Assembly (NCBI GenBank): GCA_001643675.2
Contig: LSRY02000006.1
Span: 620,001 to 684,000, forward strand
DNA: 64,000 nucleotides
Source of the DNA: Monocercomonoides exilis PA203
Taxonomy: Eukaryota > Protista > Preaxostyla
Reading direction: 5' to 3'
Below, in pieces: positions 36,402-56,383 of this stretch. Position 1 is the first letter of the stretch, and each line of letters starts with the position of its first letter. The notes below the pieces were generated by a model. That model had not been told where the DNA came from. It saw only the letters and a list, made by a program, of their open reading frames with translations, and did no database searches. The translations under genes were made by a program, and so were the position numbers.

Positions 36402-38590
36402 ATGTCAGCAATTGGATCTTCAACAACAGTGCTAATTGAAGACGAAACATCCAACGATGCAAAGGATATGCAGGCTGTCTTCGATGAAGAAGAGAGTTTG
36501 ACCAAACTTATTTGATTCATTTTGAACGATTTTTCAATTTTGACTTTTTTCTGAATGAAATTTTTTGTTCAGTCCTTGACGACAAACCGAGAAGCATACT
36601 ACTAAATATATTGAAACAAGTAACATCTGGCACGGACCTTACGCGTGTTTCAAGTGCGCTGGCTTTTATTTCAACTTTCGTTTAAATATTCTTTTTATAA
36701 TGACAAACAGTGCCTGCTTTCATATCCGAACCACGTTCTTTTATTGAAACAACTGCAAATCTCTTTTCGCATATGGCGTTCTTTCGGGAAGCAATTGCAA
36801 TGGATGATCCTGTAGATCGTATTGCACATTTAACACGATTTTACATCTCTGGTTTTCACATACGTCCTCGCGGAGTTAAAAAGCCATATAATCCTATCCT
36901 CGGCGAAGTTTTTCGTTGCTTTTGGGATCATCCTGATGGAACTCGGACGTGGTATATTGGGGAACAAGTTCAACATCATCCTCCTGTTTCTGCCATGTAC
37001 TTCGAAAATCTGGATGCTGGATATACGATTGAAGGAGAAATTAAGATTAAATCAAATTTTACAGGAAATTCAGCTGGAACATTTATGCTGGGAACAATAT
37101 TTGTGCATTTGTTGCGTAGAAGAGAAACTTATACCATCACATACCCGGTCTGGTATGCACGTGGGGTTGTGGTTGGCAAAATGAGAATGGAGACCGTTGG
37201 AAAAACTCGCATTGCCTGCGAGCAAACAGGACTGGAGGCGCTTGTAAACTTCAAAGCAAAACCAACATTCGGCGGCAAGTACAATCAAGTCAAGGCAGAA
37301 ATATTTGAAATGCAAGGAGGAGCAACTCCGATGGGAGAGATCAAGAAAAGCGTCAGCGGGTCATCATTTACAACGCCATCACCTTCACCGTCATCGGCGT
37401 CCAGATCAGCATCATCACCGTCACCGTCATCGTCTGCATGCACTCCATCTCCTGCTTCTGTTGCTTCCGAATCCCCCTCGTCAACACCGTCTCCTTTTTC
37501 CACTACTCCTTCTTCTGTTTCATCAGCTTCCTCATCTTCTCCTTCTTCTTCAGCTTCCTCGTCTACTCACCACTCTTCCAGCAAAAAGAAGGACAGCAAG
37601 CGAAAGCCGCTGGTGACGATTCAGGGCGACTGGACTTCTGCGATCTGGGCAGTTGACCATCGGCAGCCGCCTCACTTAACACCGCCTGTCACTCTGTCTG
37701 CTGACCGCACAGAGGAATTGGCGTTTGCAGGTGCAAGCAGCTCACACAATGAATCATCGCAGTCATCATCATCTTCTCCTTTTCCTTCTCCTTCCTCTTC
37801 CTCTTCCTCTTCCTCCTCTTCTTCTCCCAGTGGAAAGTCTGCTGCATCTTCATCGCTTCCTGTTCCCTCACCGCTTGCCGGCACAAACGCCATCCTGTTC
37901 TTTGACGTGCGCACATCTCCCTTCACATCGAAGCGAGCACTTGCTGTTCCACACCAGGAGTGGTACGAATCGCGTGCGGTGTGGAGAAGCCTCACCGACG
38001 CGATGCGGGTGAAGGACTATGAGAAGGCGCTCAAGGAGAAAGCAGCGGTGGAAGACGAGGCGCGCAGAAGAGCGAAAGAAAGAGTGGCGAAGAAAGTTGG
38101 CTGGAGGCAGCGGTATTTCCACTGGGACCCTGCACCACACACGGCTGAGGAGAGGAAAGAGTCGCCGAACGGGCGGTGGAGGTTTAACTGGAGCATCGAC
38201 TGCGCCAACTCGACGGAGGAAGAGCTGAACCCGTGCGGGCGCCGCATCACTTGCTACAATGTGCCAGATATGGCTGTGCTGATGGAGACAGCTCCTGCCT
38301 TAACACACGAGCATCTCAAGAAGGACGAAGACACGAAAGCGACAGACTTCCTCACGCTCGACGAGGCGGTGCAGGCGATGGAGAAGAAGGGGCTGGGAAA
38401 TCTGAGAGCGAAATGGCCGATGGGCCCTCCGCCGTGTGAGAGAGGGCATGAACATATGCAGCACCAGCAGTCGCTGCCTTCGGTTTCGGCTGAAAAATCG
38501 ATTGAACAGACGAAGGAACAAAACGAATGCAAGGAGCCTGCCTGTGATTCAATTCATCCGGCACATTTAGAAGGAATTGCTTGCACTTAG
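36402..38590 (+). CDS. Short oxysterol-binding-protein-related protein (ORD only; 3 exons, ~684 aa)
   Basis: Exons 36402-36495, 36573-36653 and 36711-38590 give GTDLTRVSMPAFISEPRSFIE, KKPYNPILGEVF, EQVQHHPPVSA (OSBP signature EQVSHHPP) and ESRAVWR...ALKEKAAVEDEAR. Confidence 0.92.
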
Positions 38591-39003
38591 AATACTAACG
38601 TACTTTATGTTTTTCGTTTTACAATGTTTGATTAAACAACAGAATTATTGCTTTTATTTCAATTTTTCCTGTGATTTCTCATTTTTGTGTACGGATTTAT
38701 CACGATTTGGAATTTTTTTAAAAATATTTTTGCGTTATTGTTTTGTGTTGGACACTTTTAATGAAGAATAATTTTTATTTTTGTTTAATTTTTAAGGAGA
38801 AATTTAATTATTACATATTTGAATGCGTTTACGTGAAGAACAAAACTCAATACCTTCATAAAAACGTTTTAGCAAATATGCATATAAGATAACAATGCAA
38901 TTCTGTTGGATGCATAATAAAAAAAGATTGATACCATTTTATTTTTATATTAGATCAACACCCTTTCATTGGAAGTTTGATCGTAATTCGATATTCGATC
39001 TAC

Positions 39004-42000
39004 ATGACAAACGAAGAAAATTGTATTTATTTTTGGATAACTTGGAAATAAATTGTTTTATGCTTAATTCTTTTGATAATTTTCCTTTGCTCATTTGTAG
39101 ATATAGAAGAAGATCTCATTGCTAAAGGAACAACCAGCGTTGTATATACAATTCGAAACAAAAAGGATGGACGCATTTACGTTTGGAAAAAGTCTCAACT
39201 TGAGGCGAAAAGAATCGTTCCCCGACAATTTCAGCTGTTTCAGTTCCTCACGCAATTGATGACGAAAATTCATTCGCCATTTATTATTCGAATGCACGCA
39301 TGCTTTTCCAGTAATTCCTTTTTTCATATTGTGTTGGATTACGGAGGAAGAAGAACCTTACGCGATGAGATCATTTCTCGACAGAATGAGAAAAAACCTT
39401 TTTCTGAACAAGTTAGCCTTTCTTCTCTTATTTCTCTAAATTTGAGTGCAAATTTGAATATTTTAATTTATTTTAGGAAACATGGGCATTACTTGCTCAA
39501 ATGATTCATGCGGTGGCAGATTTGCATGCTGCAAAATTACACCACGGTGCAATTTGTCCGGATAGTTTTTTCATAACAGACGAAGGATATCTGAAAATGA
39601 GTTTGATAGATCATTAAAGTTAATTATGTACTATTTTTTTTTCCTGAATGTGGTGAATTTTTTTCAAAAAAACTTGAATGATTGTTTTCCACAGAGACAA
39701 CAAACATCAAACATAACAAAGAGCAAAATGTTCCAGAGAAAGCGGGACAGAGGTATCATGCACTTTCGTTTTGCTTTTTCTCTTTATAATGTTTTTTGTT
39801 TTCAATTATTTATGATTTCAGTCATTATAGACTTCAAGAGCAACCAAAGTGTGTATCCAAGAATTCGTTCATAAATAATTTTTATTCTTTTGATTATTAT
39901 TTTCATGTTCATTCAAAACTTAAAATACGTTGATTTTATTAAAGGCCACCAAATCCTTCTGATATTTTCGCTCTTGGAGTCATTACACACGAATTACTAA
40001 CTCTGTCTCTTCCTTCAATTGTTGATGATACAAAATCAGTAAACGAAAAGAAAGCGCAAAATGCTGTTCCACAACCTCCCAAAGGAGTTTCATCTGAACT
40101 GTGGGGACTTATTTGGGAAATGTTGAAAGTAGTATGCTATAATTCAAAGTATTATTTTATTCTTATTTCGAGTTTGCTGAATGTATTTCAGAATTTTTTT
40201 GAATGAAATTATTTTTTCTTTCTTTTTTTCACAATTTAAAAATTATCATTTTTATTTTTATTTAACACAAATTTATAAATTGTTTGCTTTCTTCAAATGT
40301 ATTTTATGAAATCATGGTGGCATCATCTTCATCAACAGCAACCAAACGCTCGCCCCAAAAGCGAATTCATTTTGAAACTCCCACAAATCAAGAATCATTT
40401 GAAAGAACTGAGTATCCAGTTTCCATCTCTCGGAACTTTCGATATGGATACACTGACATTCGCAGTGCAAGAGAATCAGAACTTGAAAGAGAAAGAGAAA
40501 GAGAGCCCCAAAGAGAAAGAGATGGAAAAAGACAAGATTCTCCGTGCTCTTGCTGAGAAGGAGAACGAAGCCAGATTGGCCGAGCTTGCCACGCCTCTTC
40601 CACCAGAAGATACAGATGACTCAGCATCGACCATCAAATCTGACATTTTGAATCGCTCAATGATCGACATGTATTCAGATGTGCAGTTGGTCAATCTGCT
40701 GAATGCATGTGTGGAAGTGAAGACACCACAATTGCTGATGACTCAGAAAGATGCCAAGCCATTGAAATCTGAATCACCTACTGAAAAATCGATTGAATCG
40801 CTCTCTTCGCGCACTCTGAATGAGCCTGTGATTTCGAAGCTGGTGAATGATATGGTCACCAAATTCTGGGCGTTTGCCAACGAGAAGCAGAGGAGCGGAC
40901 ACATTGAAGAATTAGACGGAGAAATTCTTCAGAAGAATTTGAATCGAATTGCGAAGTTGTTGATGGTGAAAGCAGCAATGGACCAGCTTCATGCGATTGT
41001 TGATCGCTATGCTCAGCTGAAGTCCGCCGAAGAAGAGCGCGAGAAGACAGAGAAGGACAGCAAACTTGGACACGAAGACGACTCCCGATGGAAACGCAGG
41101 AAGAAGAAGAAGGCGGGCCAGAGCGACACCACCAGCGATACGGGGACGTCTCCTTCTGCCTCGTCGCACATGATGCCTCAGCTGGAGACAGAGCCTCTGC
41201 CTTCACCTTTTATTGCATTTGACTGGGCAACGGTTGTGTGCTATGATGGGCCGCTGAACATGGCAGATCACAGAATATTTATTGAGTTTTTGTATGATGT
41301 GTATTGCGTTGGGTCTTCAGTGAAGCTGCTGCTTGAGAAAGCGATTGAAGCAGAAAGAGAAGGAATGATAGCAAATCTGATGGATGGCAAGCCATCAAAA
41401 TGGAGCGATGGCTATAATTTTGACAAAGCCATGTCTGTTTTGACACTAGGGAATGGCTTACCACCACCTCCTCTGTTTCCACTTCATCGTGTATTCACAG
41501 CATCGGCTAAAAAAGTTTGTGAAGCAACAGCTAAACAGTTTCAAAGCTTAGCGATAGCAACTGCGAGTTCTTCGACAGTTCCGTCATCATCATCATCATC
41601 TTCTTCTTCTTTACAGCCACAGCCATTATCATCATCAACTCAACCTTCAACTCCTTCAGCACCAGAACATCAACCAAGTCTTTTGTGGCGAAACACGAAA
41701 GCACAGCTGGATCTGATCAAAGGAATGATCAGCGACACACAAGCAGAAAAGCCATTCTTCAACCTGAGGCTCTTTCAGCTGGATAGAATAATCGAGGAGA
41801 CCATCAGAATCTCCAACAGCAATAACGCAAACACCGACACAAGCGCATCATCATCTTCTGCTGCTGCTGCTGCTACACTTTCTTCATCAACCACTCCTTC
41901 CGATTCTGCTTCTTCTGCATCTGCCTCAGCTTCAAGCACCTCAGCCACTAATTCTTCTTCCACTTCACCCACTTCAACTTCATCTTCGTCTTCTTCATCA

Positions 42001-45000
42001 ACCACTTCATCTCCTGCAGACACACAAAACAAGATTGAATCAAAATTGAATTTAGATATTGAAAGGCGGAAATCAGCCATCAAGCCGGCGCGTTCTCAAG
42101 AGCAATTAGCTGAATTAACAGCTCTTGTTACAGAAGAAGTTACATTTGCACGAGTAACTCCTTCATCTGTTCCGTTGTGCCCCATTGAGACTCTTCCACT
42201 GTTTGCCTCTCATTCCGTTCCTGATACCTTTGCTCTCTTTATCTCTCGCTACACCATCGGGCAGGGCTTAACGAAACGCATGTACAACATTTTCCGTTGT
42301 CTGGATGTTCTGCTCACGCTTATTCTCATTGCGAACGATGACTACCAAAGACAGCAGCAGCAGGCTGCCCAGGCGCCTGTACAGTATCGCATCTTTGATG
42401 CTGCCAAAGGGACAGTCACTGAAAGCTCACGATTCATTTCTGATGCAATTTTGGTAGGGATATTCACCATTTCACTGATGCGAGCAGATATTTTGGTCAC
42501 TTTGAAGTCACTTACCAAGGATTGCCTGATGTCTTTCCTTGAAACTGGAATCGAATCCATTTCGTATCTTTTCCAGTCTGCAGCGAAGAATCCAAAGGGA
42601 TCTTTGATTGTGCCTGGCCAGCCGCTCTCTCCTGAAATCATAAGCGAGCGAATTTCAGTGTTTGATACGTTGAGCACTCCAATAAGCACTTTTTGCATGT
42701 TGAGATGGATTAATGAAGATCTGCTCTTATTGGCAGTGTCCGAGATGATAACGATGGTTAAGCTCAGATATCGTCATATCCCCACACCCCGCAACACACG
42801 TTCTGACCCCCGTATCCTCACAAACGAGGCAGCACTGCTGTTAAGTCTGCTCTGCAGAAAAGAGCAGATATTCTCGAGACTGATGTCTCCTCCAATCAAA
42901 TTCAAAAAGATCCCCCAGCAGCTGGCACAGACCCCGCAGATATGGACACAGGCAAGCATTGCTGCTGTGCTTCTATCTGTTTCACTTGCTGATTTTGAGA
43001 TAGATCCAAGGGCTGCATTCCACCAAGCCCCATCATCTAATGATTCAGCTCCTTCATCCACATTGATATCTACATCATCTAGTTCATTTTTACCTGGTGA
43101 TGCACCAATCCCACTCTGCGATCCGCCGATCAGTGCAATTAGTTGGCTCCGCACAACAATGCTGCGTGATCCAGAGATCTTCTTTTTCTCCAGCGTGCAG
43201 ATTCTGACCACGCTATTTGTACGGACGCGACGTGCTGTGTGCTTCAGCCGCCATTACCGCCGCACTTCCGTCCAAGTTCCAGGAAAGACCGTGCAGGAGA
43301 AGAAAGACGAGCTGGACATGCCGGACGAGGGCAGTCTGAGCCGAGAGGATTTGGAGCTTCGTGTGAAGCCATCAGACATTCTTTCCGATGCGCATCATAC
43401 GCCTGTACCGCCAGTGTTTTTCAGCGACGAGCTTGTGCCAGAATGCCTGATATCGACATTGGTTACTTGTGAGGTAAAGGACGATACTGTCGAGCATGTG
43501 CCTGTTGTGTCTTCACATGCATTGGGTTTGCTTCTACGGTTTTTGAATGCGAACACCGCATTTTGTTCACAAGGACCGTTAAACACTTTAAGAGAATCAA
43601 GAAAAATTCTGATTGCTATTTCAAAACTAGCTGTATCCCCTGCTGTTGATGAGCTGACATTCATCATGATCGACGATCTCCACAAACAGCAAGATTCAAA
43701 AGTTATCAAAAAACTGAATGAATGGAAAACTATCCCAGCTGTGCTTAGCACACTCAGAATTCCAGATGATCGTATCAGAGCCACCTGTTTGTGTGGAAGG
43801 AGCTTTGAAAGAACTGTTTTGAATTATGTGATTACCTATCTTATCGATATCTACAAAGATTTCATTGTGAAGGGGACATCTGCCAACAAGCCAATTGCAG
43901 TTGCTATTGGAACTATGATTGCCAAACACATCATTGAACCTCCTGAGGCAAATGAGGTACTTCAACTTACATCCAAAGCGCTTCAAACGAAGATCCAAAG
44001 CTCACAATTCACAATGGCTGTTCATCTTGTCCAACAGCTTCTTACAAATCTTAGTGATTATCCAGACTTTTTCCGTAGCCTTCTCAGCAACCAGAACATC
44101 CTTCAGTTCAACAAGTCATTTGTTTCCCAACTTGAATATAGACTAAAGAGTCTTCAACCGAAAACAGGCGAAGCTGAAAACAAGCAAGACATTTCTAGTG
44201 ATCACGCTCATTCATCAACAGAAGTCAAACAGAACAGCCAAGGTGCAGAAGGAACAATAACAACTGCACAACCGTCTTCTTCTCAGCCACAAGCTCAAGG
44301 CGCAATTAACGTGTTGAATGGAGCAAGCAATGCTGGTGCTGTTCCAAATGGGAATGGTAATCAAAATATTACAGCTGCTGGAGACGGAAGCGCGGCCAGA
44401 GGCACTCCTCCACAGATGGTGAAATCTTCTTCTTCACTCGCTCCCGCTGCAAGGGTTGCAACCGCAGCCAATGTTGGAGGGCCGACTGCAGCAGCTGTGA
44501 CACCTGGAGGACAGTTGATTGGTGCAAGCGGAACTAATCTTGCTCCTCTAGATGTTGGTCTGCTTAATCGAGGCATTGCCATTCACGCAAATACACCCAC
44601 ACACTTTGGTCACTCTATTTCTGGGTTACCTCCACCAGCGACTATAAAGGATCAAAGAATCATCGCAACAACAGTTGCCCAACCTCTTCCTGCTCACACA
44701 ATTTCTCATCCTTATCCAGCACCATCCCCACATACAATTCAATCACAAGCAGGTCCACCTGTACCGAGCAGTTCATCTGAAGGAAATGTGTCTTCACATC
44801 CTCAATCTGCTCCTCCTCAACAACAGCCTGCCTCGACAACACAACAACAGTTCACTCCATTCATCACACCAACACAAGTCTTTGGACCAAATCATCCACC
44901 AAATACAATATTTGACAGTGCAAGCAAAGCCACTGGTGCTCAGAGGGAAAATGCACCATATCCGCAACATTTCAATAACAACATTCCTCTTCCTGGAATG

Positions 45001-48000
45001 CCAATGTCAAATTCACAAGGCCCAGCTGCTGCCACGCCACCACAGATGCCAACGCAACAGTTGCCTGGCAGCTCACCTACAGGATTTCCACAAGCAGCAC
45101 ATACTCAGCCTGCATCTGCTCTCTCAGTTAACAGCGCTCCATTTACTCCGCATTTCAACACTCCCGGCAGCAATGGAAGCACTTCAGCCAACGGAGCGTA
45201 TCAGCGTGATCCGTTCATTCCTCAGGGGCAAGGCTTGCCAGGAGCAGCAGGCGTTGCTGCAGGAGACTCCTTACGTGAAATGGGAGAAGTGGGAATGTCA
45301 CCACCGCCTGGCCCTTCATATTCACCAAAGAGTTTTATTCCGCTTGCACAGAGAGTTCAAAATAGCGAGAATTCCAAAAGATCTTTTGCGGATGCACTGC
45401 GTAAATCGCAGTTCACAGTTACATCAAACATTGAGCTTCTGCTGATGTCACCAGAGCAGAGAGATGTTCTAATACCAATTCCACCAGATAACATGCAAGG
45501 CCAGCTGATGAAGATTATGAATACAGTTTCACGAGACAATGTGACAGAAAAAGCACAGCATCTGAAGAAACTGTGCAAAGAATACTCTGATTTTGTTGCG
45601 AAATTTGTTGTGTTGGTGAAAGCAACTCAGTTTGAGAACCAAGCCAAACTTTATTCTGATCTGGTTGCTGAGACAAAAGACTCACAAATCAGAAGAAAAG
45701 TGGAAGCTGAGCTGTTTTCAGCTTGTTCTGTGCTAATTCGTTTTGACCATTCTTCGTCCGAAAAAGGCTACGAACGCAACCAGTTGGCTGCGTTGGGATC
45801 ATTTTTAGGCTATTTTGTGATATGCAACAACCGACCAATACCAAGTTCCCAACTAGACTTAAAAGCTGCTCTTATTTATGGACATCAAACAGGAAGACTT
45901 CATGCTATTGTCCCATTTGTGCACAACATACTCATTCACTGCAAGGAGTCTTATGTGTTCCGCAATCCGTGCCAGCCATGGCTGTTTTCAATTGTTGAGC
46001 TTTTGAGAGAATTGTATCAGTTACCAATACGTAAGTCGATCAAATATAAGATTGAAGCAATCGAAGATGGATTAGGAAAGCTGCAGCTCGATAGCTCCTA
46101 TCGAAGAAGCACGACATGGGCGCTTGATGCTGCTATGGAAGACGAAGAAGGGTTGGATTATCATCACGATCGCTTATATTCGGGGAGCAGTGAACATAAA
46201 GACAAGAAAGAAAAAGAAAGCTCAAAGGGTAAAGATTCTGAAAAGGAGAAAGAGAAAGACGAGATTAGCGGAGAAGATTCAGCACCCCTTTCTCCTGTTG
46301 AATATCCTCAGGGGCCTTTCCCTTTGACCACAAAGAAGTTGGACACATTGACAAAATATCCGCTTTTGTACAATCCAAACTGCGAGGTGGAAAAGAAACT
46401 GAAACAGTCCGATGACTCAGATCATCCATTGCCATTGAATTCGACTGCAGCAACATCAGAATCTGCTTCTGCTTCGTCATCTTCATCTTCATCTTCCTCT
46501 CCTTCTTCAGAACAAGCAGCATCTGCGGAAAGCGATAAAGCAGCTGAAACAGAAGGTGAATTATTAGATTCATTTGCAGCAAACACATCTCCACTCTTCT
46601 GTGATTATTCCCCTCCTTCGGAAATTATTCAGGCAATCAAAAACAAGCAAGTTGCTTTTGCGCCCCATCTTCCTGAGCCAGTTTCCCATCTCATTCAACT
46701 CGAGCTCGATAGCCTGAAATCACCCGTCCGCACAGCAGTACCTCCTTCAGAAGCATTCAGCCCAGCGGAGCTGATGATCCCTGCTGAGCATTTGCCTTCT
46801 TCTGTTTCCTCTGTCATGGAAGGAAGCCTGCTTCCACCTGCACTTGCAAAGCTTGTATTTTCTACTTCTGCTATTACTACTCCCACAGCTTCTGATATAC
46901 TAAAAGAAGCAGAGGTGCTGCAAGCACAGCTGGCAAAAAGAGAGAACGAACGAGACATTGAAAGGAAAAAAATACTTGCTGCAGAAAAAGCGAAGCTTGA
47001 AAAAGCAGCAAATCTCAGAGAAAAGAAGAAAACAGAACTTAAGCGCTTTGCCAGTTTGCATCCTTATCATGTCTTTGAGCTTCTTTGCGAAGGATATCCG
47101 TATGATGCCGTTTTGCCTTCCATCCTCGAAGAAGTTGCAAAAGAATGCGATGGTGACAGTTTTGTACCAATTAGCACATTAGCTCGAATGGGTTCCTCTT
47201 CTTCAACACCAGAACCGATATCTGAAAGTAGTTCGAGAAGTTCCTCTGATTTATGCGTGGGATTTGACAGAGATTCATTGCTTTGTGGAAATCATCGTCC
47301 AATTCCTCCGCAATTATTGAGGTTGCGTCGCCGCCCTGATGTCAGATTCCTGAAAGCAACTCATTTTGTCTCTATATTTACGGAGGACGCAGAAGAAGAG
47401 TTTCCTGATAGAGCACTTCCTCCATTGATGCATCCACAATCGCCTTTCATGTTATTCCTGTTTACACAAGTGGTGGAAGTTATGCGAAATATACCCATCG
47501 ATCTTTTCAAGTATATTTGTCAAAAGGCAATCCCTTCAACTATTATTGGAGTGATGTATATGATCTTATCAGAACATTCAAGCTATACTGGAACAGAAAA
47601 AATATCGGTTACACGATCTCAAACATCAAGTGATAATGCAACAGAAATAAATGCTTCAAGCACTGAAAATGAAAGACCTGAGCCTGTAAATGAAGCAGAG
47701 AAAGCAGAATCTGATTCTGCTTCATCATCATCATCTGCTGTGGATAATCGTTCAAAGGAGACAAAGCTTAATGAAAGTACAACTCAACTTACAATTAGCA
47801 CTGAGGCATATGCAATCTGCCAGGATGTGTGCTTGGGACAGACATTGCTCTTTGCCAAGGAGTATTTTATACAGCACGGTGTGCAAAAATTGATTGAGAC
47901 ACTGAAGCTGCATATTCGCGAAGATGTAAGAGACCACGAAGATGTGGAGCATGATATGATAGAAATTGCCAGCTTTGCAATAAATGCTGTGTGTGATGAT

Positions 48001-51000
48001 TACATATACTTGACTGCAGACATGGTGTGGAAGCAGGCTATGGCCTTCTTGAATTTCGTGTTAGGTGAGCATTTTTCGGTGAGAAAAGATGCAATTCGAT
48101 ATTTAACTGAAATGGCTAAGAAATACAATTGTGAAGATGTTTTAACACACGCATTTGCAGATCCATTACGATTTCATCCAGAAAAAATGATTATGCTTCC
48201 TCCTGAACTGAATCACACAATGAATTCGTCAAATCTTGTTCGATCTTTAAGTACTATAAATTCAATCATTCCTGAAAACGCAATCAAAGTCAATTCTCAT
48301 TATATTATAAATACGCTCAAAGGAAACGAATCAAATAAAAAAGTTGTGATCACACCTCTCTCTTCAATGATGGATCAACGACAGCTTCTTGCCTCCAGAG
48401 AAGGACGAAATATCGATCTGTCAATTCTATCGTCGAATTTGTTGCGTGTATTCGCATCAGCCATTTATCGCGATTCTCACAATATGCTACCAGCCACTGA
48501 ACAATACAAATGGGAGGAATACCAGCAATCACTTACGACAGTCAGAATCTCTCTTCCTGCGCCTAAGTTGGACCTGTTTTCAGGCAAGAAAGGAACAGAT
48601 TCCCAGTCTCCTTTGACTTATTTCCACGGCAATTGTTATACCAATCCATTTACTGTACTTGAGCTTCGAAGGCATCTTGAGAATGTACGAAATATCACAG
48701 CAGAACGCTTCAGAAAACGGCTTATTGAGTTTCACACAAGACTAAACATGATTTTACAAAATGTTTACAAAATTGCACAGCTAAGCGTGGACTTGGATCT
48801 GATTGCTAAAGAGCAGGAGTTAGTGCCGCCGAATTATCCAAGTCTAGAAGATGTTGCAAAGAATGTTAGACAAATGCTTCAAACAAATATGCAGCGGGCT
48901 CTGGATAGTCCTTGCCAGTTTAGATTTTTAAAATGCTATTTTGACAAGGCTAAAAATGAACAAATTAAGATTCATCTAGAAGCCCACAAATTGCAAAGGA
49001 TAAAGACGCTCTCGACAGATATGAGAATTTTTATTGTTTTTCTCACTCAGACATGGGCATTGGAGTACAATAACTGCCTTCGTCGTGCTGTAGAACTCAC
49101 ATATCAGCAAATGGTACAAATTCAACGCCAGCAACAGGTCAATGTGGGAGACATTGGCACTCGCCAGCCAGTTGCTAATTTCATGGCACAATCATTGTTG
49201 ACCGCAGTGAATGGAATTGTTACTGCAGTTCGAGATCGTTTTCTATTTTCAGCTGTACATCGTCTCACACGAGATTTGTGTAATGGACCTCCCGCCTCAG
49301 TACGAGTATTTTACGCTCCTCCAATCTTTTCGTTTCACAGGCAGCTTGTTGAGAGACAGCACTTTACGTGGAAGGATGTGATTGAGCAGTACTCATCACT
49401 AAGAGAAAAGAATGAGTTTACTCCAAAAATATACAATTCTTGTATTCCTGCGTGTGTAAACTTCTCTGATGGAGCTTATCCTTTGTCTGCATTCCCCACA
49501 TTTAACTCACGAAAGCTGGATCATGATCTATTTTTCACACAACTTGGCCACCAGCTTCAAAAAGCGGGTGATCGTTCACTTAAACATCCAATGCAGGATC
49601 TATCACAAATGAGGATTAAATCCATTTATGAAAAATTAAACATAAAACTTGATTGGGAATCTGAAGACGATTTGTGGATGGAAAACGATGAAAAAGAGGC
49701 GAATTGTAGAAACCAGCGGCTTCCGGACTCTCCTGTATTTGCTGCAAGCGCTTTTTATAGGAATTTGGAAGATGAAATCAAAAAATTGTTTAAAGGATGT
49801 ATTGAAGAGGATGTATCTGCTCAGGCTGTTGATTCGGCTCGTTCGCATTTGACATTCAATCTTTCATCATTTATTGAAGAAGGAACGGATACGATCAAAG
49901 AGGAGGAATTCATTGTACCACCTATTATCCGCAATACACGTTATGCATTGGGGTATATTCATTCTCCAGCAACTGAAGTGTTTATCGTTGATCCTTATTT
50001 CAAAAATCTCAACAACGAAGCTCTAAAGACAGATGGAAGACCTGTTGGAGTGCCAATGACTGAAATTCCGAAACTTGAAGATATCGTTGCTAATTGTGGG
50101 AATCTTGCTCTTTTGCTTTGCACTACGCTTCCACAAGAGGAGATATTTCCTAAAGACGCTGACAAAGCATTTCGCTTGTTGCATGTGCATGCCATTGAAG
50201 CGCTTTCATCATTCTCTCCTCAGATTGTACATACAGCTATCAGGGAAACTCTTTTATACCAAATAGCTTCTTCTGCGTCATCGTCTCCTGAGATGGCTCC
50301 TTATCTACGGTTTGGAAGTGCCGCATTACTTCCCTATGATGTGTTCAATTTACCAATTGAACATCAACTAACAAAGAGTGAAATGGCATTCCACTCCTTT
50401 TATGACGAGAAGGTACCATCGGATAAGATGCCACATCTAATAAGAAACATCGACCATACAAATGCTACAACAATAATCACAGAAGCTCGTATTGACTCTT
50501 TGATATCTTCGTTATACATGCTTTTGGAAAAGGGTCTTCTTGATGCTCCTCCAGTTCTGAATCTATTTACATCAATTCTAGCTTCGATGTGGAAAACAAC
50601 ATTTTATTTGTATCCACTGTTTCCTGAAAAGAAAAAGAACGACAAGAAAAAAGGTCTCAACAGAGAGATGGAAACGTATCACCTAGACGAGCACTCGAAG
50701 GATCTTCTTTTAGATCAGACTTTGGTGGAAAATACTGTAGTTGGCGCCATTCCACATTTGATGATGCTCATTCGCCAATCATTTGAAGATGCATCTCCTC
50801 TTCCCAGCCAACGAAAACTGTCTCCTGCGGAAAGACCTTTTCCTTGTGACATTGACATTCCCAAAGAGAAAAAGCAAGCACCGGTTGTGTTGATGACACT
50901 TGTTCCATCTCTTGTCTTATATTTCCACGCATCACTAAAACTTATGAAATTCCTAAATGAACTCTCTTACTATTCATTTCTCGTCACAAAGAAGCGATAT

Positions 51001-54000
51001 TCTCGTAAGGTTGAAGAGAAAGCACGTAATTCATGGACAAATGATTTTGATAGAAGGGAAAGCATGTCATATTTCACACAATCAGACAGGTTCCAGCGTG
51101 ATCTGACAAGTAACTTTGCAAGCGATTTGTGGAGTTATCGTGATAAAGAAAACGACTTCCTGCAAGTAGCTCCTCATCCACTGCTGATATATGCAGTACC
51201 TTTGATTCAGCTGATCATCAAAATCGTGCATGATTGGATTAAGATATCTTCTTCAATAACATGTTTTTCTCAACTGACAGTTGCATCCGGACCTTTGAAC
51301 GACTTAACAACAATTACCGATTTTCTGCAAGCTAAAAATGTTGGATTAGAAAACGTCCACGTTCAGCACGAGCTGTTTTGCGATTTATTGAAAAGCCGGC
51401 AAACAAATCCAAGTTCTCCAACATATCCACACGACTCTGATGAACGATCACCCGCTGTTCGTCTTTCAATTGCTTGGAAGCAAATAGATCTCGTTCTGAT
51501 AGAGTTACCGAAAATTATTGATACATCACTGGCTATTTTAGCAGGCAGGGTTGAAGATGCAGTTAGCCTTATTCAGCGCAATTTACCTTTGTCTCTTTCT
51601 AATGCTGCTGACACAAAAATTGGTGAAGCAAAAAGTGGTGCAGTTAGCTCATCGTCAAACGAGATAATTCATGGAAGTAATATTAATGAAAGCAGCACGA
51701 AAGGAACAGAAGAAGAAAACTTGGATGATCCATCAAGCTCTACACAAAGTTCAGAATCCATTCAGAAATTACCTTCTACGAATTTTGATGCAAATTTGAA
51801 GAGCTTCTTTGTTGGATTGAGCGATCAACTTTGTGTTGTTGATCCAAAAACGAAAGCAATTTCGCTCCTAGGCGCACTACCAAACATGGAAGAAAGAAAA
51901 CGGAAAGTTGAACTTGAACCTGTCATTTTCCACAAGGTGATAACACAAGACAACATAGCAACTTTTGTGAAGGAGGCTTATAGCAACTGGATTCGAACAA
52001 CACCAACATGCACAGAAAGGAATAAGCTTATTCAGACAACTCAAATATTTGTGAACTGGGCAGATGAGCATCTTCTCCTCGTTGATTATCGAAATCTTCG
52101 CCACTTGGCTTCATTACTTTTGGATAAGGCAAGCGATCTTAGAGCTGATGTCGCAGAAGAAAAGATCAATCCCGAAAAGGCACAAAATTCGCAGACTAAA
52201 GAGATTCTCTCTGAAAGACTTGTATTCTTTTTCCAAATGATTATCCAACGTCAACCACACACTGAAGTTGCTCTTAGTCGCCGTATCAAAGCGATATTCC
52301 GTGAAGTTATGGCGGCTGTTGAAGGTCTATCATTTCGCATGAAAGAACAGGGGAAATTGCGAGATGTCAACGGATATATATTCACTACCCAACTTTCAGT
52401 AGATCCAAAATTGAAACCTGCTCCCAACAACTCCCCAGCACTTGATGAGTTGTATAGCGAGCCAACGTTCGCTTACCATCTTGTTTGCAGTCAGTTTCAC
52501 GATTTAGCTTTTCCCATAGTCGACTCATTCTTTTCGAGTCTGCCTAATCCAGTCAAAGATTTTACTGAAATGGATGCTGCTCGTGTTGTAGGTCAGACTC
52601 CGTTATTTATATCAACCATTAACATGAACTTCCTTGAAAAGAAGGATAAGCTAAACGAACTTGAATTAAAATTAAAGAAGCAAAGAGAGGCTGAATTGAT
52701 TGAACAAAGCTCAATTTTCGTGTTTTGCGATGTGCTGTGGCAGATGGACGATAAGGAAATGTTCACATTTGCTTCTGAGTATCTTGTGCTTCTTCGTCAG
52801 CCTTATATGATGAATAGAATGGCATCAAACAGATATGCCTATACTGGAGGAGATAATGTTTCACAGGCTCCAGTTTACCTCTTCTTGGAGAATGATCTTT
52901 GGTCACGATATGCTCATATTCTTGCAAAAGGATTTCATGCATTGGCTGCATCTCCTCCAAAGCAGATACAGGAGAAAATACTTGCATCAGCCAGTTTACT
53001 TATTGATGATTTATGCAAAGCATTCCCTGACTTTGTTGCAACGAGCATTCCTTACTTTGTTGATTCGATTCCGCACAGCTTAACTGATATACTAAACAAA
53101 ATTACTTCCACAGTTCTTGTTTCTCAACGCATACCAAGCCATTTTCCAAATCCTACTCTTCCTTTGAAGTCTTGGTCGGTTTTGCAAACGCCAGAGCTAT
53201 CTATTCAAAATGTGCCAAGGGTGAATTATCGATTAATTACAAAGCATTATTTGGAGGATGTAGATGCATATGTTAGCGAATATCTTGCACCAAACGTAGA
53301 TGAGCGAACAAAGATTCGAGATCGACTTGGAATGATTCAGAAGCTTCTCAATTACACTGTTGACACGAAATCTTCAACTCTCATACCTCCTACTCAAAGT
53401 GCTGATGAAACGTTGCCTCGAGCCAGCTTCCTTGAAAAGTTAACCAAAGAAGATAGCAATTTGATGGAGGACTTGTATCAGATGTTGACAATAACATCAG
53501 GCATTCCTTTCCCATATTATTTATGCGATGAATTTGCTCTCAATAATGTCGCTCGATATATTTTGTGCTATGTTCTTGATCGCTCAGTTATTCATCCTGG
53601 AGTCACACCGCTTGCTAATCGGCTATTTCCTTCAAATTGCTTTGGAAAAGAAAATGTTGTTATTTCTCCTTTTGCAATTTCTGGTTATTCGATTTTCTTT
53701 GCTTTGTGTAAATCTCTTCCTGAGCCTCTTATGATGATATTAATTGAAAGTATTTCATTTTCTTTAACGTGCCCAAGCCCAACTACTGCTCTAGCTGCAC
53801 ATTCTCTCTTCTTTATTGCAATGAATGGAGATGTAACTGCACTCACCACCAGACTTTCGGAAAGCCCTTCTGAATCAAAGCCTTCTTTGTTTACGCCTGC
53901 CGATCTTAAATCTTTGGTTCTGCCATCTCCACCGACTCATTCTCAATCGAATGATTTCTGTAACTCTCTTCCAATTATTCAATGGACTATTCTTAAAGTT

Positions 54001-54144
54001 CTTATCAATCGTTTCAAAACTCCAAATTCTCCTCCTTGGGGTGTTTCTGCTGCGCTTCTTGAGCTTTTGAATGAAACGAGCTTCTATCAAGGACCATTGT
54101 TTGATGAAATTAGAAAACAGGCTGATAAAACAAAAACAGAATAA
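39004..54144 (+). CDS. NOT1: CCR4-NOT scaffold NOT1/CNOT1 homologue with N-terminal NEK-like pseudokinase domain (7 exons, ~4,843 aa)
   Basis: The last exon (40339-54144) holds a CAF1-binding MIF4G-like block at ~45478-46065 (PPDNMQGQLMKIMNTVS...LGSFLG...NRPI...LDLKAAL...IVPFVHNIL...VFRNPCQPWLFSIVELLRELY...IKYKIE). It also has a TTP-binding-like block (~43800-44110: QLLTNLSDYPDF) and a Not1 C-terminal-like block (FPDFV...DSIP...LTCPSPTT...ILKVLINRF...PPWGVSAALLEL). Upstream exons 39004-39022, 39101-39411, 39477-39600, 39695-39752, 39822-39848 and 39945-40131 encode kinase subdomains I-X and splice in frame. Confidence 0.8.
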
Positions 54145-54373: not shown

Positions 54374-56383
54374 TTATAAAAAACTTCTAATCCATCTATT
54401 TGAATGTGGCTGCGAAATTTTTTTATTTGGGTGCAAAAAAGTATCAGTTAAAGATTTGGCTTCTTCTTTTGCCTTTTCTTCCATTTGTTGCTTTAACAGT
54501 TTGCGTCGAAGTCTCTCACGTTTGTCGGGGTTGCCAGGTTTCTGACGATTTTTCCTTTTCTTCTTTAACTTTAAAGTATCAAAGCACCAAATCTTATCTG
54601 ACTCTTCTTTCCATTGCGTGAGTAACTGACTGTGAATATTAAATCGAATTAATTTTTGAGAGTGTTCTCTTTGCTCGAGATGGTTTTTTGTGCAATTTTT
54701 GGGGAGAAATGGAGAAACAATGATGATATCATTATCACAATTATCTGTTTGAAAATAACCCGAAGATCTGCTTGAAGATGAAGCGTCGGATGAACGTTTA
54801 TGAAAAGAGATTCCTCCAAAAGGATACATGAAGCAGATCGATTCGGCCTCATATTTCTTGTGCAGCTCTTCTGGAAATGCTGATATCAATTGACCTAACC
54901 GAGAATATTCGAAATTTTTGAGTGAGGGTTTTGCTAATGGTTGAAAATGATGTGAATTATCTTCATAAAGTTGATTTGAATAAATTTCATGTTTTTCAAG
55001 AGCTTTGCTGTTTTTCTGATTCAATAATTCGTGATAACTTTTCGCTCCTTGAGGATTTAACGGAATTGAAAGTGATTGTGTGGAATTGCATTTCATGTGA
55101 TCTTGCGTGGATTTACTAAATCGCTGATTCATCTTCATTTCTTCATTTGGACAATCCTTTCGTTTTCTCCTCTTAAAAGCCGACTCAAAGTCAACTTCAC
55201 TTGTGATTCTTTCAATGAAGTTCATTAATTCTGTGTTTTCTCCAAAATTAGACTTGTTTTTCACTTTCTCTTCCTTTTGTTCAATACATTGCTTCAATTT
55301 TTCTCTTTCTTCTTCAGATAGGCAAAGGATGTCTGCTTCGCTGAGTTTTTTCTTCAGTTCTTCGAGTGTTTCATTCGATAGCTGGCTAAACTGAAGCTCG
55401 TTAAAATTACTTTTCTGGATGCACAGTATCTTTTCTTCCGCTTCTTCCCACATTTTTTTTTCTTCTTCACTTGTAATCCAGTTTTTCACAATCCATTCGT
55501 GATACTTTAAATAATGTCTTTTTGCATCCTTTATCTGTTTTCTAGTAAGTTCTCTTCGGACTCTTATGTGCTCGCTTCTCGAGAATTCAACACTTTCTCT
55601 GTCAATATCAAATGCTCCTTCATTGCTCTTCGAAACATAGCTCACGTGTGCAGCAGCAAGTTCAGCATCTTCTCTCTCCCATGTTTCAAGCAACTTAAAG
55701 CGATGCAGACGAGCAGCCTCAAGCCTTAAGCCATCTTCGTCGTTAAATCTAGCCTCAAAGCCAGACTTTGATTTTGTTGATCGCGAAGATGACCATTTTG
55801 AAGCAGTATTAAATATATTGTCTTCTAGACAAGAAGAAGAAGAAATAGAAGATATGCAGGCAGGTGAATGAGGTGAAGATCTTACAGTAATCGAGCTTTT
55901 ATCGTCTGAATATGAAAATATTTTTGATCTTGTAACTACTGAACATGAAATCAAACTTGGATCAATTGTTTGATTGAAGTAATCCTTTGATGAAAAAAGC
56001 AATTCATTGAAGTGTTTTGAATTACTATTATTTTGATAGCTTTTCTTTTGTTTCGCAATTTTAAAATTAGCATGGTAAATCCTCTGTTGAAAAGCATTCA
56101 TCTCAAAAGATTCTCCAATTGAATCATATTTCCAACGACTTCCTTTCAAATGCTTAGGAAACGTTCTTTTGAGTTCATTTTCCACTGGAAAAAGTAGATT
56201 TTCATTCATTTTATTTGCATCTGCGCTTGAAGAGAATAATGTCCATTTGTCGTCAATTGATTGCAAAGAACTATCTGTTTGATAAATTGATTTTGATTCA
56301 CTTCCAGAATACGATTGACGAAGGTGAGTTTGAAGATTTGATGTTGATTCCATTGCATAATCTTTTGTTGCGGCAGATGACAA
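54374..56383 (-). CDS. Hypothetical protein (~670 aa, charged, coiled-coil-like segments); true 5' end uncertain
   Basis: 2-kb ORF convergent with NOT1. The track start is TTG; first in-frame ATG at 56353, and a probable splice acceptor near 56399. No domain recognised. Confidence 0.75.
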   Translation of the reverse strand: MSSAATKDYAMESTSNLQTHLRQSYSGSESKSIYQTDSSLQSIDDKWTLFSSSADANKMNENLLFPVENELKRTFPKHLKGSRWKYDSIGESFEMNAFQQRIYHANFKIAKQKKSYQNNSNSKHFNELLFSSKDYFNQTIDPSLISCSVVTRSKIFSYSDDKSSITVRSSPHSPACISSISSSSCLEDNIFNTASKWSSSRSTKSKSGFEARFNDEDGLRLEAARLHRFKLLETWEREDAELAAAHVSYVSKSNEGAFDIDRESVEFSRSEHIRVRRELTRKQIKDAKRHYLKYHEWIVKNWITSEEEKKMWEEAEEKILCIQKSNFNELQFSQLSNETLEELKKKLSEADILCLSEEEREKLKQCIEQKEEKVKNKSNFGENTELMNFIERITSEVDFESAFKRRKRKDCPNEEMKMNQRFSKSTQDHMKCNSTQSLSIPLNPQGAKSYHELLNQKNSKALEKHEIYSNQLYEDNSHHFQPLAKPSLKNFEYSRLGQLISAFPEELHKKYEAESICFMYPFGGISFHKRSSDASSSSRSSGYFQTDNCDNDIIIVSPFLPKNCTKNHLEQREHSQKLIRFNIHSQLLTQWKEESDKIWCFDTLKLKKKRKNRQKPGNPDKRERLRRKLLKQQMEEKAKEEAKSLTDTFLHPNKKISQPHSNRWIRSFL

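Follow-up and report, generated by a model that had tools for sequence, protein, structure and literature searches.

The closest described systems are the NOT1 scaffolds themselves, the NEK protein kinases and the pseudokinase subunit PAN3. NOT1 is the scaffold of the main machine for shortening mRNA tails, and to our knowledge, and in the literature that we searched, the NOT1 of all eukaryotes studied consists purely of a helical-repeat scaffold. In the other deadenylase, PAN2-PAN3, a pseudokinase fold is physically coupled to the poly(A)-shortening complex, with PAN3 as a subunit of its own bound to PAN2. Here we describe a NOT1 gene of the mitochondrion-less protist Monocercomonoides exilis, found in a window of 64,000 nucleotides (the whole stretch of DNA analysed; C58:620001-684000, from a genome of 82.3 Mb on 101 contigs; positions below are those of the window). 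This gene encodes a protein-kinase-fold domain and a NOT1 scaffold, which are made as a single protein via splicing. The protein has the module order of yeast Not1, human CNOT1 and Trypanosoma NOT1, namely a TTP-binding HEAT domain, an MIF4G CAF1-binding domain and a C-terminal NOT1 domain, and differs from them in carrying the kinase fold at its N-terminus. The kinase fold is covalently part of NOT1, unlike PAN3, and the likeness to PAN3 is an analogy of architecture only.

A single reading frame of 4843 amino acids runs through six small exons (39004-40131) and one giant exon (40339-54144), and all six introns have GT..AG ends. A sequence-only reading of the window had placed six kinase exons before a GTATGC donor at 40132 and a CAG acceptor ending at 40338, and every one of these coordinates holds. 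The giant exon belongs to an open reading frame (ORF) of 4615 codons on the + strand (40297-54144), which carries the NOT1 domains; upstream of it lie short open stretches between AT-rich segments with GT..AG ends. The exon opens with QPNARPKSEFILKLPQI in phase 0, and its acceptor is the first AG downstream of about 60 bases. As that reading had also stated, the unspliced kinase frame stops before reaching subdomain XI: exon 6 ends with LIWEMLKV, GTATGC follows, and a stop codon is met about 70 bases past 40131. Within intron 6, the giant ORF has an in-frame ATG at 40297. Our script translation of the seven exons is identical over 4843 residues to a public protein (P0001); the spliced model was profile-searched exon by exon, and P0001 was used for the whole-domain analyses.

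The proposal that the kinase and NOT1 parts form one gene is borne out by RNA, in the form of assembled contigs from four runs of one study, compared over 38400-42400. In each run one contig spans from 38971-38982 to 41575, and all six GT..AG joints (Table 1) are present in all four runs; since these joints are spliced, contaminating DNA cannot be the source of the contigs. The joint 40131/40339, on which the connection between the two parts depends, is flanked by 187 and 1237 letters in the RNA contigs. RNA depth is zero over 40142-40275, inside intron 6, and the depth in the bin 40276-40409 has the value expected if coverage begins exactly at 40339. The contigs break at 41576-41639, which is marked as a skipped repeat, and contigs of 12.5-12.7 kb begin again at 41640. 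From there to the stop at 54144 the distance is 12.5 kb, and this agreement in length suggests that the giant exon has no introns and is colinear in RNA to just past the stop codon. The interval 41576-41639 is a Ser-rich low-complexity repeat of the giant exon, and it breaks the assemblies of all four runs. Two odd joints, 40504/41846 and 40504/41978, have non-GT..AG ends and sides of 20 letters, and look like repeat artefacts.

Three independent lines of evidence, from the profile match, the conserved residues and the introns of paralogues, show that the kinase domain is complete only across the joint 40131/40339. In the exon-by-exon search, the Pkinase profile matched exon 2 (39103-39411, 1.7e-8, profile positions 5-96) and exon 6 (39946-40131, 0.0057, profile positions 177-245 of 263), the second match ending just before subdomain XI. 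On P0001 the same profile covers residues 9-255 (4.8e-21, profile positions 3-259 of 263), and the first 20 residues of the giant exon raise the score from 72.0 to 82.8 bits (+10.8) and carry the end of the profile coverage from 245 to 259. Arg247 is invariant and Pro248 nearly so among 40 related kinases, and both are encoded 3' of the joint, in agreement with the earlier suggestion that the giant ORF starts, in phase 0, with the missing subdomain XI. Two kinase paralogues of the same genome, on C36 (...VVAMLRR, intron, DPKTRPTSEEVLHHPLI) and on C69 (...VISMLSL, intron, EPTDRPSALDLLYHPLI), have an intron at the position of intron 6; an intron after PFSEQ is a second position common to the fused kinase and the paralogues. 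Intron 6 is thus an old kinase-internal intron, and the 5' part of the giant exon is the last exon of the kinase itself, which means that the fusion point must lie further downstream, somewhere in the linker of about 1100 residues 3' of subdomain XI.

The chemistry of the domain was judged from an alignment with the 40 related kinases, in which 38 columns are at least 90% conserved. P0001 retains 19 of these 38, including G16, K36, H127, H133, G169, E177, D186, G191, S229, R247 and P248. The other 19 are changed, among them G14A, E54Q (the alphaC Glu), R134G and D135A (both of HRD), K137C, N140S, G152K and D153T (the DFG position), together with several residues of the activation segment and the P+1 region. 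Positions 54, 134, 135, 137, 140 and 153 are occupied by E, R, D, K, N and D, respectively, in every one of the 40 relatives. The catalytic Asp, the Asn, the DFG Asp and the alphaC Glu, by which an active kinase is recognised, are replaced by A135, S140, T153 and Q54. The kinase had been called catalytically dead from its AKGTTS G-loop, from HGAICPDS in place of HRD and from the missing DFG, and the replacement of six catalytic residues upholds this. At the same time, an AlphaFold2 model of the domain reaches a pLDDT of 84 and a pTM of 0.85, with disorder confined to the activation segment (residues 152-182), and at least 500 kinase structures match the fold in Foldseek at E up to 0.001. The alignment thus supports a pseudokinase pattern, with the fold retained and the chemistry lost, and an atypical phosphotransfer activity appears very unlikely.

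The fused kinase is probably NEK-like. NEK7 tops the Foldseek list (1.2e-16), as the NEK assignment made from the window would have it; Wee1, CaMKII, Aurora and NEK2 are less than an order of magnitude behind, and in sequence comparison with solved structures CDPK2, CaMKII, NEK1 and NEK2 all stand at about 1e-12, so that CaMKII, CDPK, Wee1 and Aurora are nearly equal and the family name is only probable. Among solved structures, NEK1, NEK2 and NEK7 rank with the closest in sequence. The consensus of the 40 nearest database kinases (IW..FIQ, HRDLK.ANIFL, GTPYY.SPE) is one that we take to be NEK-looking, and one M. exilis relative bears the automatic annotation name Nek4. The closest relatives of the domain form a lineage-specific kinase family on contigs C36, C15, C17, C30 and C69. 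The nearest of these are 35-42% identical to it in exon 2 and retain HRDLKPEN, by which they are apparently active. With the NEK kinases and this family, the fused domain shares a W..Q motif before the catalytic loop and a FIT ending after it; it differs from both in lacking the catalytic residues and in continuing into NOT1 instead of a NEK tail.

The identity of the giant ORF as NOT1 rests on three Pfam profiles, all over their cut-offs: CNOT1_CAF1_bind (4.2e-41), CNOT1_TTP_bind (3.4e-7) and Not1 (1.5e-5). On the spliced protein these three and Pkinase are all matched, as the sequence-only reading had anticipated. The Not1 domain is where NOT2 and NOT3 dock on NOT1 proteins; the C-terminus of P0001 also aligns with the NOT1 paralogue on C55. 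The N-terminal CNOT1_HEAT profile has no match listed on P0001. The CAF40/NOT9-binding DUF3819 has none on P0001 or in the whole genome, which is a weak negative, as the genome was searched exon by exon and the controls gave no match; the blank may reflect divergence rather than loss. The protein is about twice the usual NOT1 length; giant open frames are common in the M. exilis genome, and its size is therefore not special here. As a side observation, the UCH_1 profile matches 71 places in the genome, many in open frames of 4000 to 10690 aa; as evidence of PAN2 these were rejected, being unrelated ubiquitin-hydrolase-like places.

The question whether this is the only NOT1 copy has a negative answer. 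The genome contains four NOT1 paralogues, each a giant single open frame, and the kinase is on the C58 copy only; we looked for a kinase beside the C55, C6 and C2 copies and found none within about 10 kb. The four are deeply diverged, the other three being only 35-44% identical to the C58 copy even in the CAF1-binding domain; this divergence, like the missing DUF3819 match, sets the C58 protein apart from described NOT1 proteins. The genome also holds two CAF1-family loci and one NOT2/3/5-type (NOT2_3_5) gene. Four NOT1 scaffolds suggest that this oxymonad has several specialised CCR4-NOT complexes.

Table 1. Parts of the kinase-NOT1 gene (window coordinates) and genomic positions of related kinase and NOT1 loci
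Feature	Coordinates	Strand	Evidence or content
5' untranslated leader	38971..39003	+	RNA contig starts at 38971-38982
Exon 1, start codon and first 6 codons (MTNEEN, plus one base)	39004..39022	+	joint 39022/39101, four runs; translation equals P0001
Exon 2, kinase N-lobe: degenerate G-loop AKGTTS, beta3 Lys36, alphaC Gln54 for Glu, hinge	39101..39411	+	Pkinase 1.7e-8; residue alignment
Exon 3, alphaE and catalytic loop HGAICPDS (relatives: HRDLKxxN)	39477..39600	+	joints 39411/39477, 39600/39695; residue alignment
Exon 4, DFG position (KTT, no Asp) and activation segment	39695..39752	+	joint 39752/39822; residue alignment; low pLDDT
Exon 5, 27 bases, P+1/APE remnant SHYRLQE, Glu177 retained	39822..39848	+	joints 39752/39822, 39848/39945; residue comparison
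Exon 6, kinase subdomains IX-X, SDIFALGVITHELLT ... LIWEMLKV	39945..40131	+	Pkinase 0.0057, profile 177-245/263
Intron 6, 207 bases, GTATGC...CAG, kinase-internal	40132..40338	+	joint 40131/40339 in four runs; zero depth inside; paralogue introns
Giant exon start, kinase subdomain XI QPNARPKSEFILKLPQIKNH, invariant Arg247 and Pro248	40339..40398	+	Pkinase bit-score gain; R247 invariant in alignment
Linker, about 1100 residues: charged helical stretch, Ser-rich low complexity, then possibly an alpha-solenoid part	40399..43800	+	no relatives found
CNOT1 TTP-binding HEAT domain, P0001 1399-1516	43807..44160	+	PF16417, 3.7e-7, 30.0 bits vs cut-off 27
NOT1 MIF4G / CAF1-binding domain, P0001 1956-2152	45478..46068	+	PF16415, 4.8e-41, 141 bits vs cut-off 33.4
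NOT1 C-terminal superfamily homology domain, P0001 4359-4571, weak match	52687..53325	+	PF04054, 1.7e-5, 24.4 bits vs cut-off 22.7
Stop codon of the 4843-codon frame	54142..54144	+	ORF and P0001 identity
Kinase paralogue L007	G000:C36:323883-327188	-	closest-relative family
Kinase paralogue L013	G000:C69:1495889-1499176	-	closest-relative family
Kinase paralogue L010	G000:C30		closest-relative family
NOT1 on C58			4621-aa open frame; TTP_bind, CAF1_bind, Not1; Pkinase added by splicing
NOT1 on C55	G000:C55:399494-413587	+	4698-aa open frame; CAF1_bind, Not1
NOT1 on C6	G000:C6:536719-552309	+	5197-aa open frame; TTP_bind, CAF1_bind, Not1 (below cut-off)
NOT1 on C2	G000:C2:1407837-1427735	-	6633-aa open frame; CAF1_bind (partial), Not1 (below cut-off)

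The upstream neighbour (36710-38590, + strand) is an oxysterol-binding-protein gene (Oxysterol_BP, 3.1e-59), whose own RNA contig ends near 38773-38784. There is no RNA depth over 38802-38935, and the kinase-NOT1 transcript is therefore separate from it. Just downstream of the NOT1 stop, on the opposite strand, lies an ORF of 669 aa (54374-56383, - strand) with no Pfam match at E up to 0.001.

We searched for a second protein of this architecture. With residues 1-640, a HMMER search of 1.84 billion representatives gave only P0001 itself below 1e-30, and none of the best 150 matches is a second kinase-NOT1 fusion; they are ordinary kinases, none more than 31% identical or longer than 1876 residues, and a distant or independent fusion could escape a search of this scope. 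Word-index searches for long proteins that match the N-terminal 600 residues, the kinase region or the CAF1-binding region returned only P0001 itself, and these blanks are weak, because one such search missed the three NOT1 paralogues of the same genome. A metagenome scan with residues 243-660 gave no match. The linker has no paralogue in the genome, and among protein-atlas look-alikes residues 850-1400 gave only weak generic ARM/HEAT-like similarity and residues 263-650 none. The PAN2_N and Pan3_PK (PF18101) profiles have no match in the genome, which would fit an absence of PAN2 and PAN3; again these are weak negatives, for the searches ran exon by exon and the controls gave no match. On P0001, too, Pan3_PK finds no match at E up to 0.01; the parallel with PAN3 drawn earlier stands as an analogy and goes no further.

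The gene model itself is not new. The identical 4843-residue protein is present in NCBI, UniRef and EukProt as 'putative CCR4-NOT transcription complex subunit 1', and the precomputed Pfam domains of the public record include PF00069 and PF07714. We found no paper that couples Monocercomonoides with CCR4-NOT or NOT1 or discusses the fusion architecture; the 2019 genome paper has no mention of NOT1, CCR4, Nek or pseudokinase, and no kinase-NOT1 protein is described in the passages covered of a cross-eukaryote survey of mRNA decay. The impression from the window that the architecture is undescribed thus holds for the literature searched, while the model and its kinase hits were already public.

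Considering all this, we favour, as probable though far from settled, a reading in which one spliced gene encodes a fold-retaining pseudokinase, a linker and a NOT1 scaffold, with the pseudokinase kept as a non-catalytic docking or regulatory module; the functional part is what we infer, and gene structure, splicing, domain content and the replacement of catalytic residues are results shown above. Transcription starts at about 38971, the transcript is spliced six times, and the 4843-residue product consists of a NEK-like pseudokinase (residues 9-255), then a linker of about 1100 residues that is specific to the lineage, then the NOT1 scaffold. Most likely, the last exon of a kinase from the lineage-expanded family became continuous with one of the four NOT1 paralogues, and this exon would have supplied subdomain XI and the C-terminal tail. 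The kinase domain would afterwards have lost its phosphotransfer chemistry and retained its fold. On a specialised CCR4-NOT complex it may now have a docking or regulatory role without catalysis, perhaps by holding a partner once bound by the ancestral kinase close to the deadenylase. Several points weigh against this proposal. Half of the conserved kinase columns are changed, which also fits a decaying passenger domain, and the AlphaFold2 confidence derives partly from an alignment of active kinases. The searches above gave no orthologue by which purifying selection on the pseudokinase might show. The C-terminal Not1 match is barely above its cut-off (24.4 vs 22.7 bits), and no single stretch passes alone. 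Finally, all RNA evidence comes as assembled contigs of one study; contigs lose rare isoforms, and hence a minor kinase-less transcript that starts in intron 6, with the ATG at 40297, may exist.

The same facts can be read in other ways. The fusion could be real and fairly recent and its kinase a functionless, decaying passenger, kept for its promoter, start codon and first exons. We regard this as rather unlikely, though it deserves serious attention: changes in 19 of 38 highly conserved columns would be expected of such a passenger, the other three NOT1 paralogues are without a kinase, and the blank among the best 150 matches from the 1.84 billion representatives means that the fusion may be young. 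Against it, the six short exons all keep the frame and canonical splice sites, the changes sit at catalytic and activation-segment positions while the fold-holding H127, H133, E177-R247, D186 and G191 survive, and the Pkinase match of the domain still reaches 82 bits, with a confident model fold. Alternatively, the domain might be an atypical kinase that is still active, with CCR4-NOT subunits or bound factors as its substrates and with displaced catalytic residues, as in WNK and CASK. The beta3 lysine K36, the G-loop glycine G16 and the intact fold of the AlphaFold2 model would suit such an enzyme, but the known enzymes of this kind mostly miss no more than one or two catalytic residues, and here six are replaced simultaneously (Q54, G134, A135, C137, S140, T153), namely Glu of alphaC, Arg and Asp of HRD, Lys and Asn of the catalytic loop and Asp of DFG, which makes this very improbable. 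A bolder form of the regulatory proposal is that, where PAN2 and PAN3 are undetectable, the C58 NOT1 took over a PAN3-like role, its pseudokinase binding a nucleotide, a poly(A) ribonucleoprotein or a signalling partner and so steering or gating one of several specialised CCR4-NOT complexes; this would be a very improbable outcome. That a truncated kinase and a NOT1 gene were merely joined by read-through or in a chimeric contig, as an artefact of annotation or assembly, is extremely improbable. The RNA contigs do stem from one study, and the ATG in intron 6 could start the giant ORF, but each of the four runs independently shows the precise GT..AG joint 40131/40339, depth in the intron is zero, the start of coverage fits 40339, and it takes the giant exon, whose preceding intron the paralogues share, to complete the kinase domain. 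Two separate genes, or read-through between them, were rejected on the RNA joints, the paralogue intron and the gain in Pkinase score.

The fusion is known from one species, and its gene model was already public. Within these limits, it illustrates cleanly how last-exon fusion can turn a lineage-specific kinase gene into a pseudokinase module. An expressed NOT1 with a built-in pseudokinase would be a natural experiment in which a signalling-type interaction domain is coupled to mRNA deadenylation, and, if the PAN3-like reading were true, it would be the first case of a pseudokinase sensor that is an integral part of a deadenylase scaffold.

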